Shown here: piece after piece, positions 6,171-63,445 of the stretch
How the letters are laid out: every line of letters begins with the position of its first letter
Position numbering within the stretch: position 1 is the first letter of the stretch
Source: Podarcis muralis
Taxonomy: Eukaryota
Length of the DNA: 64,000 nucleotides
Assembly (NCBI RefSeq): GCF_964188315.1
Contig: NC_135666.1
Coordinates: 18,228,001-18,292,000, forward strand
Direction of reading: 5' to 3'
The notes under the pieces: model-generated
Databases searched by the model: none
The model's input: the letters and a program-made list of their open reading frames with translations, nothing else
Told to the model about the DNA's origin: nothing
Made by a program: the position numbers and the translations under genes

Positions 6171-6884
6171 CCTCTGCTTCATTAACCAATCAATGAGGCT
6201 GAAGTTACATGTTCAAATGCTCCCCCATGGCAGGGCGGGGAATGAACACAACACCCTACATGGAGAATGTGATCCTTGAAATCACATGAAGCTACTTCCA
6301 AAGTTCTCACCCCACTTCTGGGGGGGGACCTCTTCTATCTTTGGTCAACACAAATACCCTAGAGCAGAGGTAGCCAATATAGCGCCCTCTGGATATTGCT
6401 GGAGCCCCATCCAGCAGCATGCCAGACGTTTATGGCAAATGTTCAGGGATGTTGGGAGTTGTAGTCCAATAATATCAGAAGGGCAGAGAAAAGGCAAAGT
6501 GTGGAAGCTGAGCCACTTGAGCTTTGTACGCTTACCAGGATGGGAGAGTCCTCCAGCAAGGCAATCCTATATAGCAGTAATTCTGGTTGAGTTCAATAGG
6601 GCCTATTCCCAGGTACACATGCCAAGAGGACTACAGTCTGAATAACTCGGAGCCAGTGGTGGATGGTACCCATTGGGACTGGCAGGGCAGAAGGCAATGA
6701 GCCCAAACTGTAGGTGAAATCAGAGCCAGAATCCATGACAGGCAGTTCTTCCAGTCTGGTCCCCATCCTCTTCCTTTTTGAGTTCTACAAGGGACAACAC
6801 TGAGGCTAAGGAGGAGAGGGAAGCTTGATGGCCAGGGTTAGCCTCTAGGCTAAGTAAGAAAGTAGGCAGATAGCAACTAAGTTA

Positions 6885-7133
6885 GAGAGCCAGTGTGGTG
6901 TAGTGGTTAAGAGCGGTAGTCTCGTAATCTGGGGAACCGGGTTCGCGTCTCCGCTCCTCCACATGCAGCTGCTGGGTGACCTTGGGCCAGTCACACTTCT
7001 TTGAAGTCTCTCAGCCCCACTCACCTCACAGAGTGTTTGTTGTGGGGGAGGAAGGGAAAGGAGAATGTTAGCCGCTTTGAGACTCCTTAAAGGGAGTGAA
7101 AGGCGGGATATCAAATCCAAACTCTTCTTCTTC
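6885..7133 (+). mobile_element. tRNA-derived squamate SINE (~250 bp; probably Squam2/Anolis-SINE2-like)
   Basis: A-box-like tggtgtagtggtt, B-box-like gggttcgcgtc, body ending gctttgagactcc...ggcgggatat and a (CTT)n tail. Short flanking repeat ctaagt. Family name recalled and uncertain. Confidence 0.75.
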
Positions 7134-58164: not shown

Positions 58165-59831
58165 TTTATTTCATTTTTTTAAAAACAGAAGAATAAACTG
58201 CAATTCATTTTAATTACAGCACATATCCACAGTTCATCATCTAAGAAGGTGCTTGGAATGAATCTGTTCTAGTATTTGTTTTCAAAATATTTGTTTGCAA
58301 AGTCTTTTGTGATTTTACTCTATCCGGTTTAACTGCAGGCATTAAAAAGGCCCAAGGATGCTATCACAGGGAAAGGAAGCACGGGTATATTCACACAAAA
58401 GGAAATCCCCCCCTAGCTCCTGTTTGTGACAGCAATTGTGACTGCATACACATCTCATGTTTAAAGCATATCTTGATAAACTGTAGTTTACCCCTCATAG
58501 AATTACATTCCCCAGCACCCTCAACAAGTCACAGTTCTCAAGATTCTGTTTTGGGGGGTGGGGAGGAAATGTGCTTTAAATGTGTGGCGTGTACACAGTT
58601 CCTGAAGAGTTGCTGGATGTCCCTACGTGCTTTCTCTTTTCAGAGCTCCAGATCAGCAGGAAACACTGCTTCAGCTAAGCAGGGGTGGGAATGTAGGCCA
58701 GGAGGAAACATAAGAGAGACTGGCGTCACACAACTGCAAAGCAATATAGCCAAATGAATATAGCACGGAGGATGGCGGTGGAGAGAAACACTTTGCACTT
58801 CTATTGATTAAATGGACAAGAAATAAATCACCTTCAGCAAATGTGGTTTACATCCACAGCACATTTCAAACAGTAAAAATCACCTCCTACTTGGGGTATT
58901 TAATAAGATTTTGACAGGCAACAGCCACTGAGTAGAGCTGACTAACCATGGTTGTGCACGTTGTGTGAAATACCCTTTAAACAAGATTGCTTAGCCTGGA
59001 AGATGACGACAAGGGAATCATTGGTATGACACAGACCTTTAAAAATACCAACGCCAGTATTATTTACAAGTAGCCTTTGTGCAAACAGTGGGTGCGAGCA
59101 TGAGCAGATTTTAAATCCCTGCATTACAATTCTGGTGGTGGCTTATGAAATATAAGACACACCGTAAATATATGTCTGCTAAAATTACTTCATAATGTGC
59201 AGCATAAATTTTAAAATTTCTTAGCTGGGCCAGATGTTCAAATAAACACCAAACACTACAAAGTTTAACCAACATGGTTCTATTTAAAAACTAGTTTCAA
59301 CCATGGCACTCAGTGACAGCAATACAATACTTTCTTCACAAAGTGATGAATATAAAAATATGCCATAAATTCATTTGTAAACTAGTATTCTAATACATGT
59401 ATGTCATTACAACATACCTTTATATATATATTTATATATATAACTCTTTCCTGAGATACTTAGGGTGGTTTTCATTTTATTGTGTTGGATGCATTATCTT
59501 TGATCACTTTAAAATACTGGTGCAAGTGGGAACAACCAAAATTATACATTTAAAGTAATTAATGCAAAGATAGGGCAGAGGAACAGCTCTTACACATGTT
59601 GCATTTTGAAAAGATGGAACAGACACTGCCTTAACCATTTGACTCTTTCTGGATCAGAAAGACACCTGAAGTTTCAATTAAGAATCTACAAAAATGCAGC
59701 GTTTCAGGAATGTTAGAGGCTGGAGTAGAAGACAAATGATACAAAGGAAAAGTCATAATTCTTGTTGACTAGACATTGCCTGCAGAAGCATCTGTACATG
59801 CTGTAGCCAGTTCACAGTTTCAATATTGATA
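58165..59831 (-). other. CREM: CREM 3' UTR (distal end uncertain)
   Basis: AT-rich, repeat-poor sequence after the bZIP-II stop. Minus-strand AATAAA at 59476-59481 and 58165-58170, with more at 57965, 57479 and 57321. Confidence 0.6.
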
Positions 59832-59976
59832 CTAGTCTGTCTTGGAAGAGCAAATGTCTTTTAAGGTTTCTAGCTCTTCTATAAGTTTCTTGTTTTGAAC
59901 TTCTAACATCGCAACACGACTCTCCAGACATTTCACATATTCTTTCTTCCGCCGTCGACATTCTTTTGCAGCCTCC
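59832..59976 (-). CDS. CREM: CREM alternative terminal bZIP exon (DBD II / Ib)
   Basis: Acceptor cttctgcttttttcag|G, then EAAKECRRRKKEYVKCLESRVAMLEVQNKKLIEELETLKDICSSKTD*. 145 nt; phase matches exon H. Confidence 0.96.
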
Positions 59977-60280
59977 CTGAAAAAAGCAGAAGTAAAAAGG
60001 GCAAACAAAAACGCTTTTTGGCATGCTACTGGAGTGGCGGGAGCAGGGAGGGGGCAGGGAAACGCAGTGATGATGGTCAATATAATATGGACACCATTAT
60101 GCTTTCCAAAATTTAGAACAACTCTTCAAAAACACCTAAGGACAACTGGGATTGCAAGGGCAACACACTGTCCCTTCCTCAAGGGCCACATGGCAATCTG
60201 TAGAATTGCTTCATCTCATGCCTTGATTAGCATTTTTAGCAAAAAAATAAAATAAAAAAAGGTCCATTGCCCATTGCCAG

Positions 60281-60425
60281 TTACTCTGTTTTATGGCAAT
60301 AAAGATCTTTGAGGGCCTTGAGTTCCTCAATGAGAGTCTTGTTTTGGTTCTCAAGCACAGCCACGCGATTTTCAAGACATTTGACATACTCCTTCTTCTT
60401 CCTGCGACACTCACGAGCAGCTTCC
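60281..60425 (-). CDS. CREM: CREM terminal bZIP exon (DBD I / Ia)
   Basis: Acceptor ttgtgttggttccag|G, then EAARECRRKKKEYVKCLENRVAVLENQNKTLIEELKALKDLYCHKTE*. Two tandem bZIP exons distinguish CREM from CREB1 and ATF1. Confidence 0.96.
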
Positions 60426-61775
60426 CTGGAACCAACACAAGGCAAATGACTATAGGAAAAGGCACAGCACAATGACAACCTGGATAAAAAAAAAAGAACC
60501 TCCAGCACCAGAAAAGCTGAAATCAGCAAGTGCCAAATTGGTAAACTGTACAACAGTCACACCACCAATTCTACAGACAATGCAGAGCAGCGGGAGAAGC
60601 TTGATAGTAAACACAGGAACAGCGTCAACGTGGCATATTCAGAGTGAGAAAATTGCAACACAGATGGATGGACAGCGTTCTATTCAGATGTTAACAAAGC
60701 ACCGCTCGCTACATCAAAACTCACATTAGAACAAAAAGCACAGGACTGACAAACATCCCACCTCATCTGTTTCCATAATTCGCCATATTCGCATGCATAA
60801 ACAGGGGGCTGAAGCATCAAAGCCTACGTCTGCCAAAATGTTATCAACTAAACTGTCTGCAAAGATCAATGTCATGCTTTCTCTTCAGACTGAAGTCTAG
60901 ATACCAGACTGAAATTTTGACCCTCAAAATCCTGTTTTGGGCAAAAGGTCAAATCAGTTATAAAGGCATTAAAAGGAACCTGAATGGGTTTGCACTATGG
61001 ATTTTAAGTTTAAAATAACTATTATAGCTTATCTCTTAAGTGTCCAAAGGACTGTGTGATATGCTGCATCTTAGCTCTACCCGCAACTCACTGTACTGAA
61101 AAAGCATGGCTTGCCTGACTCCCTAGTAAGTTCATGGCTGAGCAGACCAGCTGGAGGTGTACTAGCTACAGTTCCAATTATAAGCCACTTTACTATACCA
61201 GCTATGGCTAAATGACAGGAACAGCATTTAAACAAACGTGTTGTGCTCTTTACAAAGGAAGGGAAAGTCCATCCCTTCCATCGATGGTGTATACAATAAG
61301 ATCCAGCTCTTCTTTAGGTAAATATGGGAACCTTCTATCTTGGATTTGCTGTTATGGGCACATTTTTTCATACTATTTTGGGAACTCGGTTAACAATCTG
61401 AAGTGTCTTCTCTCCTCCTCTGAAACTCAAAACAGCTTAACTGAAGCATGTTTGAAAGTCACCTATGTGAACAGCTCTGAGAAGATTTTTGTTGTTGTTG
61501 AAAAGCAGTATATAAATATTGTAAATAAGCCCAAACAAGCAACAGTGTGAAGCTTTCAGCCATGCCATCAGCGCCTCAGTTTCTGTTAACTCACCTAAAA
61601 GCTAGGGAGATTTTATGGGGTGGGATCCACCCTCTTTTTTGTAGGGTTCACAAACAAAAGGCACTTCTGCTTGCACGAGGGGGTGGGCAAGATTTCCCCC
61701 TAGAAACATCTGCACACTCAAGCTGGGATCCTACTAGCTACCATATTTATTTATTTATACAGAAAGAAAGTACAC

Positions 61776-61834
61776 CTTAAGAAAAACTGGTGCGTGTTGC
61801 ACATGTGTTACTGATGGCAGACACAAGGCTAAAC
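61776..61834 (-). CDS. Candidate alternative CREM exon truncating the bZIP (R-FSLVSAISNTCATRTSFS*)
   Basis: Long pyrimidine tract plus ccag|G acceptor, phase compatible with exon H, in-frame TAA, possible donor G|GTGTAC and tandem AATAAA at 61746-61755. Prediction only. Confidence 0.4.
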
Positions 61835-62424
61835 CTGGTAAGAGAATGAAAGAGAAAAAGAGAGCACAAACATCTGGAATCTAAGGCATGAATTTTTATG
61901 GATGAGCAATTTAAGACAAAGGGCATGAGAAAAAGCAATACCATGGATGCAGTGAGCAATGGCAGGGTTAGTTACAACTGAGACGACTTTTTCCTACAAA
62001 GCGCATGCCAACAGCAGACATTAATAGCAGAGGTCATGCACTGACACCAAAAACAAGACACACAAATAAGCTGACCACCACCACAAAAGGGGGGAGGGGA
62101 GACATCCAAATTGCAAATTACAGCAAATTTGTTTTGCTGTAACAGACACGAAATCAGTTGTTGGGAAGTTAACAAATTAAGCAAAACACTTCCACCCTTC
62201 CTTTATAAAAGCAGATGCTACATTGAAATTGCCTGCCTCAAATTCATATCCCAAACACTGGCAATAAGAGAAATGCATAAATATAACCTCTCACCACATC
62301 TACACCATATATAATTGTATAATATATGAAAATACTGAATATAGCATTTCATAAGCTATAGATCTTAAGGGGGAGAACTCTACAAAACACCCAATAATAT
62401 GCATTGCCAAAAGCCACCAGTGTG

Positions 62425-63028: not shown

Positions 63029-63288
63029 CTTTAAAGGCCACAAAGATTCAGTAATGCAACTGTATAGTATTCAACGGCACTTTAAGTGCCAGGGCAAAGG
63101 TCATCTGCAGTCAAGAGAGAAGGCACTGCTCTCTTCTCCCCAGTAAATTACGTGGGGAAACCCACTGGCCAATTTTATCTTTGGGAAAATGTTCCTTAGC
63201 AACTATACTGATTTACCACCCCGATCTTTCCTGTCATCATCTCTTGAAAGTAAATTCAACTCATTGCTTTTTCTTGAAATAGCAATAC

Positions 63289-63445
63289 CTATTTTTCATG
63301 AGCCTTAGCTCTCTTTTGCGCGTTGCTTCTTCTGCGAGCTGCTGTGGGCTATGCAACGTTCCTGGGGATGCTGCCATGACTACCCCTTGAGGTAAGGCTG
63401 TGGTTGGAGTTCGGATCTGGTAAGTTGGCATGTCACCTGTAGCAG
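63289..63445 (-). CDS. CREM: CREM exon H (157 nt; leads into the basic region)
   Basis: Acceptor ttttgttgcag|CT, then AATGDMPTYQIRTPTTALPQGVVMAASPGTLHSPQQLAEEATRKRELRLMKNR, donor AG|GTATTG. Confidence 0.96.

Follow-up and report, generated by a model that had tools for sequence, protein, structure and literature searches.

Introduction

CREM and its short ICER forms are textbook transcription factors controlled by alternative promoters and splicing, and, to our knowledge, all named CREM isoforms keep one of the two bZIP exons, Ia or Ib. Here we consider a third possible 3' ending of this gene, a short candidate exon with an early stop, located in the H–Ia intron of the wall lizard Podarcis muralis. 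The DNA analyzed, hereafter the window, is a stretch of 64,000 nucleotides (nt) of contig NC_135666.1 (positions 18,228,001 to 18,292,000 of the forward strand; RefSeq assembly GCF_964188315.1), the minus strand of which carries the 3' end of CREM, as identified by translation of its open reading frames (ORFs) and by a match to a catalogued protein. On balance, the candidate is probably a real, used, and ancient truncating alternative exon of CREM, a reading that is lifted above chance by conservation in birds and reptiles together with a catalogued mammalian counterpart. Zipper-less CREM produced via a third 3' exon is, in fact, already present in mammalian catalogues, where it has gone almost unnoticed.

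The nearest analogy outside CREM is provided by the paralogous gene CREB1, in which the testis exons W and Y reportedly insert stops and yield CREB without the bZIP domain and the nuclear signal. Like the lizard candidate, these are short alternative stop exons that truncate the protein before the DNA-binding domain. They differ from it in lying further upstream and in permitting downstream re-initiation to give inhibitory bZIP-only proteins, of which there is no sign in lizard CREM. Terminal exons created by intronic polyadenylation offer a second point of comparison, resembling the candidate in the combination of a strong acceptor, an early stop, an AATAAA signal, and a GU-rich element within an intron. 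In the lizard, however, cleavage is predicted from motifs only, and the signal is absent from the bird contigs described below except for one distant ATTAAA.

The most closely related system is found in CREM itself. When the stop-free stretch spanning exon H served as the query of a protein word search, the matches were CREM/ICER proteins, several of them without a bZIP domain. Human RefSeq isoforms 29 and 30 (NP_001254497.1 and NP_001254498.1) are ICER-type proteins that end in ...LMKN-SLVRVSSLPCTSSPC; predicted gorilla, bonobo, and colobus isoforms have a tail of the same kind, and forms from walrus, monk seal, and sea otter end in ...LMKN-SLVNISSLLCISSPC. The initial annotation of the window, while allowing for an existing record, knew of no such exon among the named CREM exons; these human isoforms show that mammals have one. 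An exon between H and Ia is not described in the full-text CREM literature searched. The exon X that characterizes a cardiac repressor isoform of CREM presumably lies further upstream than the intron considered here. The paper on that isoform (PMC4729809) gives no exon details.

Structure of the Candidate Exon

Exon H, which encodes the first half of the basic region, occupies 63289..63445 on the minus strand, as do all CREM features given below. It ends in ...LMKN plus AG, its peptide being ...ATGDMPTYQIRTPTTALPQGVVMAASPGTLHSPQQLAEEATRKRELRLMKN, and the codon begun by this AG is finished by the first base of the next exon. The coding parts of the two bZIP exons, each including its stop, lie at 60281..60425 for Ia (EAARECRRKKK...CHKTE*; full peptide EAARECRRKKKEYVKCLENRVAVLENQNKTLIEELKALKDLYCHKTE) and at 59832..59976 for Ib (EAAKECRRRKK...SSKTD*; full peptide EAAKECRRRKKEYVKCLESRVAMLEVQNKKLIEELETLKDICSSKTD). 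The exon H and Ia peptides are identical to those of Podarcis muralis CREM isoform X4 (P0003). The H–Ia intron is 2863 nt long and begins at a non-consensus exon H donor, AG|GTATTG; upstream of exon H, the window holds only 555 nt.

The candidate lies at 0.51 of this intron. The initial annotation had located it between exon H and Ia/Ib on the minus strand, a placement that is correct in intron, strand, and phase, and every sequence element listed for it is present where it had been reported. A polypyrimidine tract (61837..61864), with pyrimidines at 26 of 28 positions and an uninterrupted run of 17 nt, leads to the acceptor AG at 61835..61836 (CAG|G, in the context gctctctttttctctttcattctcttaccAG|G), the strongest acceptor-like site of the H–Ia intron. 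An exon starting at 61834 would extend for 59 nt to 61776 (61776..61834). Its first base completes an Arg codon, after which the codons TTT AGC CTT ... TTT TCT encode FSLVSAISNTCATRTSFS, giving (R)FSLVSAISNTCATRTSFS as the full frame before a TAA stop at 61777..61779. A single nucleotide (G, 61776) separates this stop from a possible donor GT at 61774..61775 (AAG|GTGTAC), which is weak by consensus and has no G at +5, although the real donor of exon H departs from consensus to an equal degree. Two overlapping AATAAA hexamers (61746..61755, read as 61755-61750 and 61751-61746) follow 22 and 26 nt past the stop. A GU-rich stretch, TTGAGTGTGCAGATGTTTCT (61702..61721), falls where the downstream poly(A) element is expected; it is defined by composition only, with a G+T content of 0.65–0.75 in 20-nt windows.

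A second in-frame AG (gtttAG|CCTTGTG, 61829..61830) stands 6 nt past the first. Its use would set the exon start at 61828 and predicts a product that continues as KN-S-LVSAISNTCATRTSFS, with a KN-SLV start. The tract had been described as longer than that at either bZIP acceptor, which is true of run length (17 nt, versus 9 for Ia and 8 for Ib; the longest run at the exon H acceptor is 12 nt). It is not true of pyrimidine count, for which the 20 nt before position -3 give a tie at 18 between the candidate and Ib, and 14 for Ia.

The candidate region is single-copy, with no second copy within the 64-kb window, and an origin from a repeat or transposon was rejected on this ground. The common GCCTTGTGT prompted the idea that the candidate descends from the acceptor or exon of Ia as a third, decayed copy, which was rejected as well (p 0.13 to 1.0 in five species).

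Conservation of the Acceptor and an Upstream Block in Birds and Reptiles

Comparison contigs were chosen by single ORFs over exon H, and seven of them (L001, L004, and L010–L014) form the bird/reptile set. L004 and L010–L014 are birds, their exon H peptides matching named bird CREM proteins; the source run of L013 (SRR29089750) is named in a songbird paper (PMC12068868). L001 is a bird or a non-squamate reptile, with an Ia–Ib block that is 92% identical to birds and 81% identical to the lizard. The sole squamate contig, L002, is from a viper (its run is named in PMC12377087) and ends before the part of the intron that would hold the candidate.

Ordinary blastn of the lizard intron against the bird and mammal contigs gives no match at the candidate exon, and conservation in the bird/reptile set is detectable only by local alignment and lax blastn. 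With lax settings, lizard and L001 share only two intronic islands in 2863 nt, one at 62008-61904 (61904..62008; E 3e-7) and the other formed by the last 65 nt before Ia. Within the first island lies a 23-nt core block, ATGGTATTGCTTTTTCTCATGCC (61944-61922), 110 nt upstream of the candidate acceptor. Its alignment form is ATGGTATTGCTTT(G)CTCTCATGCC, and it is found with 0–2 differences in all seven contigs of the set. By our own estimate, a match of 22/24 between two introns of such sizes would arise by chance with a probability of ~4e-5.

The acceptor is conserved along with the block. The strongest or joint-strongest acceptor-like site of the intron (17–19 of 20 pyrimidines plus CAG) lies 96–110 nt past the block in the lizard and in six of the seven contigs, namely L001 and all birds but L013 (96–101 nt in these six), and these introns, which range from 1.7 to 2.9 kb, each contain only one or two sites of that strength. 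That a common block-acceptor spacing should have arisen by chance is, on this evidence, very unlikely. The CAG itself (position 2595 in L004) is kept in seven of the eight sequences, L013 having CAT in its place; the tract score of L013 (15/20) is given at the second AG. In birds, the second in-frame AG lies 12 nt past the first. It has been lost in L011 and L012, and the first has been lost in L013, such that every bird contig retains at least one of the two.

The same comparison bears on whether the candidate is a chance pseudo-exon in an AT-rich intron, with the nearby conserved block unrelated to it. Taken alone, the motif set is within chance expectation. On the minus strand of the window, an AG preceded by 18 of 20 pyrimidines occurs 15 times among 4351, or ~0.7 times per 2863-nt intron. 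A YAG with at least 17 of 20 pyrimidines occurs 27 times, with an AATAAA at no more than 120 nt in 3 of the 27 cases. AATAAA is present 55 times on this strand, which gives a chance of ~5% for one within 60 nt, and an open run of 16–21 codons is unremarkable, at (61/64)^16 or ~0.46 for 16 codons. These frequencies and the weak donor are what a pseudo-exon would lead one to expect. Yet the site was picked blind to conservation and falls 70 nt away from an island that is the only conserved one within the interior of the intron, and the aligned sites are also the strongest acceptors in L001 and in five of six bird contigs. We therefore regard a pseudo-exon as improbable.

A more substantial alternative, possible though in our view doubtful, is that the block and tract act as a cis-element of the intron without marking an exon, in which case the AG, stop, and AATAAA of the lizard would be incidental. 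Such an element might, for example, recruit pyrimidine-tract- or YGCY-binding splicing factors and so steer the choice between Ia and Ib, or it might act as a transcriptional enhancer. This would explain why conservation ends at the AG, with nothing downstream kept, and it is in keeping with the UGCU and CUCUC motifs that we read in the block. The 3' half of the intron can, moreover, be loosely aligned between L001 and birds, through to Ia, as would fit a wider regulatory region, and word searches yielded no catalogued bird or reptile isoform that uses the site. What a cis-element leaves unaccounted for is the form of the conserved sequence: in the lizard, L001, and five of six birds, the strongest tract leads into a CAG placed 96–110 nt past the block, which is the shape of a 3' splice site, and birds retain one of the two in-frame AGs. 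Mammals, furthermore, demonstrably have an exon in the H–Ia intron. Were the acceptor to prove unused, the block would remain the only deeply conserved element inside the intron and would need another explanation.

A feature of the opposite strand is far less probable than either of these. The sequence cttaccag is the reverse complement of CTG|GTAAG, which could be the donor of an antisense transcript, and the plus strand reads ...AAACCTG|GTAAGAGAATG at this site. The donor-like CTG|GTAAGAG at 61835-61845 is strong, but it is lizard-specific. Birds and L001 have tcttcag, the reverse complement of which contains no GT, and conservation thus extends to the acceptor reading and not to the donor reading. 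Plus-strand ORFs at the site are short and unremarkable.

Two further functions for the conserved region were considered and set aside. A recursive splice site was rejected on the basis of sequence at the junction, which is CAG|GTTTAG in the lizard and CAG|TT in birds and L001, so that AG|GT is confined to the lizard. A hosted structured RNA was rejected after searches gave no Rfam match at E up to 1 and no conserved fold; the consensus fold of -6 kcal/mol has a positive covariation term (1.38), with a compensatory change in one of 20 pairs.

A Mammalian Exon in the Same Intron

The exon responsible for the mammalian zipper-less tails can be placed in genomic DNA. Contigs L005–L009 were judged to be non-human because their exon H peptides differ from that of the human isoform. 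In the mammal contig L005, the tail SLVNFSSLPCISSPC maps from 6489, within the H–Ia intron (between 3889 and 8460). The exon, at 6489-6594, stands behind tttttatttctttatAG|CCTTGT (tatAG|CCTTGT) and has a TGA at 6532-6534; with a donor-like CAG|GTGTTT after 6594, it looks like a 106-nt cassette.

The mammalian exon and the lizard candidate lie in the same intron, near its middle in both cases (0.57 in L005, 0.51 in the lizard), and in the same phase, the AG of exon H plus the first exon base making up a codon. Each has a frame for a short tail followed by a stop (15 residues in the mammal, 17–19 in the lizard), and inclusion would have the same effect on the protein, namely the loss of half of the basic region and the zipper. 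Measured from the second lizard AG, the two also have the same first bases, CCTTGT, which give KN-SLV. The remainder of the tail differs, with matches at 5 of 15 residues by our own count. They differ, too, in how they end. The mammalian exon has a well-conserved donor, no nearby poly(A) signal, and a stop 60 nt before the donor, whereas the lizard has a 59-nt unit with its stop 1 nt before a weak donor and an AATAAA 22 nt later. The 23-nt block of birds and reptiles was searched for in the mammal contigs and not found, and the sequence common to mammal and lizard consists only of tAG|CCTTGT and a CATGT at the same offset.

The mammalian exon is itself variable in its 5' portion, as set out below for contig L007. 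Farther along, L005 and L007 differ by one mismatch over the 75 nt that run up to and past the donor-like CAG|GTGTTT, which suggests a possible separate function for the 3' half of this exon.

Observations That Weigh Against Use of the Site

Several findings count against the candidate being a used and ancient exon. At the level of the lizard sequence, an insertion of 10–12 nt places two extra AGs upstream of the tract, and an acceptor with an AATAAA, as a motif set, would be expected ~0.1 times per intron of 2863 nt. As we read the sequence, the first AG lacks a good branch-point A at the usual spacing. The nearest consensus-like one (ttcAt, 61847) precedes the two AGs by only 12 and 18 nt, respectively, a spacing that might favor the second AG, which mimics the mammalian start.

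Between species, the exon bodies of the lizard and of birds, L001, or mammal fail to align above the level of shuffled sequences, and comparison of the 3' flank of the lizard candidate with birds and mammal gives the same result. The tail peptides differ as well (RFSLVSAISNTCATRTSFS in the lizard, SFKTSAYAIAHNLQEC in birds, and SCNTRATTLLCTACRKFDANL in L001). The donor is not conserved: most birds share the donor-like AAG|GTG of the lizard, which L001 lacks. Nor is the poly(A) signal, which is AATAAA in the lizard and ATTAAA in L001, with none near the exon in most birds. The initial annotation had made its case depend on conservation of the acceptor or the frame in other species; such conservation extends to the acceptor and the upstream block in birds and reptiles, and not to the frame, tail, donor, or poly(A) signal.

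Protein catalogues give a similar picture. A 64-residue stop-free query containing the lizard tail had no words in common with any catalogued protein of 35–112 amino acids; catalogues thus list no lizard isoform of this type in that size range; and the exon H word-search matches include no short bird isoform with a corresponding tail. As for mammals, DNA around the exon is no more similar between mammal and bird/reptile contigs than expected from shuffled controls (z -1.0 to -0.4), and what speaks for orthology with the mammalian exon is its position, its phase, and eight bases in common, features that make such orthology plausible. The mammal contig L007, moreover, is without the acceptor AG (TACAA) and without the stop (TGA to TGG), with +5 nt; the change lies at ~7060-7110, to be compared with 6480-6540 in L005.

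Predicted Product and Regulatory Role

If the candidate is, as we favor, a used exon, splicing would proceed from exon H (63289) to 61834 or 61828, and the frame would run for 17–19 further codons to the TAA at 61779-61777. The predicted product, ...RKRELRLMKN(R/S) followed by 17–18 residues, would be without the rest of the basic region and the leucine zipper. As in CREB, the nuclear localization signal (RRKKKEY) would be located in the part encoded by Ia or Ib, so that a truncated protein would be expected to lose it too. The loss of this signal would weaken the idea of a nuclear sink, at least for the long forms. A role as a co-activator sink, which had been proposed for the product, found no support either way, and the tail, donor, and poly(A) signal are not conserved.

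The lizard transcript would most likely end at the AATAAA pair with its GU-rich element. Onward splicing, in which the weak donor at 61776 would be joined to Ia or Ib, appears less likely, and the stop would in that case be predicted to escape nonsense-mediated decay (NMD). The reasoning behind such escape, already given in the initial annotation, is sound, because the stop would stand 1 nt before the last junction and Ia–Ib would act as one conserved terminal unit (687–702 nt). The converse proposal, a poison cassette targeted to NMD, was rejected: a stop more than 50–55 nt before the last exon junction would be needed, the lizard stop is 1 nt before the possible donor, and the exon body is unconserved. 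In the mammal contig L005, the stop-to-donor distance is 60 nt.

Selection would appear to keep the acceptor and the upstream intronic control block rather than the peptide. With a drifting peptide behind a retained acceptor, diversion of transcripts from bZIP-coding forms is more likely to be the selected function than any activity of the tail. A likely role is, then, that of a truncation or early-termination switch that would divert part of the CREM/ICER pre-mRNA, and the candidate may be what corresponds, in birds and reptiles, to the exon that gives rise to human RefSeq isoforms 29 and 30. The account can be carried further, to a single orthologous truncating exon ~300 million years old, of which the lizard candidate, the acceptor aligned in birds, and the exon of mammalian isoforms 29/30 would all be representatives. 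The acceptor and block would be selected, the peptide would drift, and the whole would form a regulated switch that tunes bZIP-competent CREM/ICER. In this full form it is speculative, and we think it unlikely.

A truncation-switch layer of cAMP-response control of this kind is not discussed in the CREM literature searched. Should conservation of the acceptor hold from lizards to birds, and perhaps as far as mammals, the truncation would probably represent an outlet for regulation that selection maintains, and not noise in splicing. The 23-nt block and the tract would then constitute a concrete, testable element for cAMP-dependent control in testis, pineal, and immune cells.

Other Features of the CREM 3' End

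Zipper-less forms that likewise end soon after exon H are catalogued for turkey (A0A803XMS9), peacock (A0A8C9FP73), and Xenopus tropicalis (a CREM protein of 78 amino acids). The turkey and peacock tails (P0071 and P0085; ...WSYPHGFL) map 100–200 nt past exon H, at 1857-1957 of L004 and 1749-1886 of L010, where the songbird equivalents carry stops. The galliform tail is hence a different, proximal alternative exon or a read-through, away from the conserved acceptor. The Xenopus tropicalis tail (P0101), ALHCFQGSCPGVPEKEKGIREMS, comes from reading the Ia acceptor region and Ia in a different frame. The corresponding lizard reading, in the region of 60426-60450, gives ALCWFQGSCS before a stop and would be a third route to a zipper-less product. 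Retention of the intron past exon H (63264-63288) is another and trivial truncation route, adding YCYFKKKQ before a stop.

At its other end, the predicted 131-amino acid protein P0003 departs from the usual ICER start, MAVTGDET. Its residues 1–31 are MKDCFFSFRQPACSCVDCAHFSHVIGLPSLT, after which it continues into exon H, pointing to an alternative first exon in this species.

The region from the Ia acceptor to the Ia stop and on through the spacer to the Ib stop (59804-60493) was aligned against birds, L001, and a mammal. It aligns as a single block of 687–702 nt with 76–78% identity, the non-coding Ia/Ib spacer being as conserved as the exons themselves; conservation of the block with its spacer fits the view that Ia–Ib acts as one terminal unit. 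Even lizard and mammal are 76–84% identical over the last 65 nt of the H–Ia intron. This stretch contains, 24 nt upstream of the Ia acceptor, a second acceptor-like TAG (cctaTAG|TCATTTGCCTTGTGTTGGTTCCAG|GGAAGC, 60426-60454) that is almost invariant in the lizard, birds (L004 and L010), L001, and the mammal L005. If used, it would add eight in-frame residues to the basic region, as S-HLPCVGS-R.

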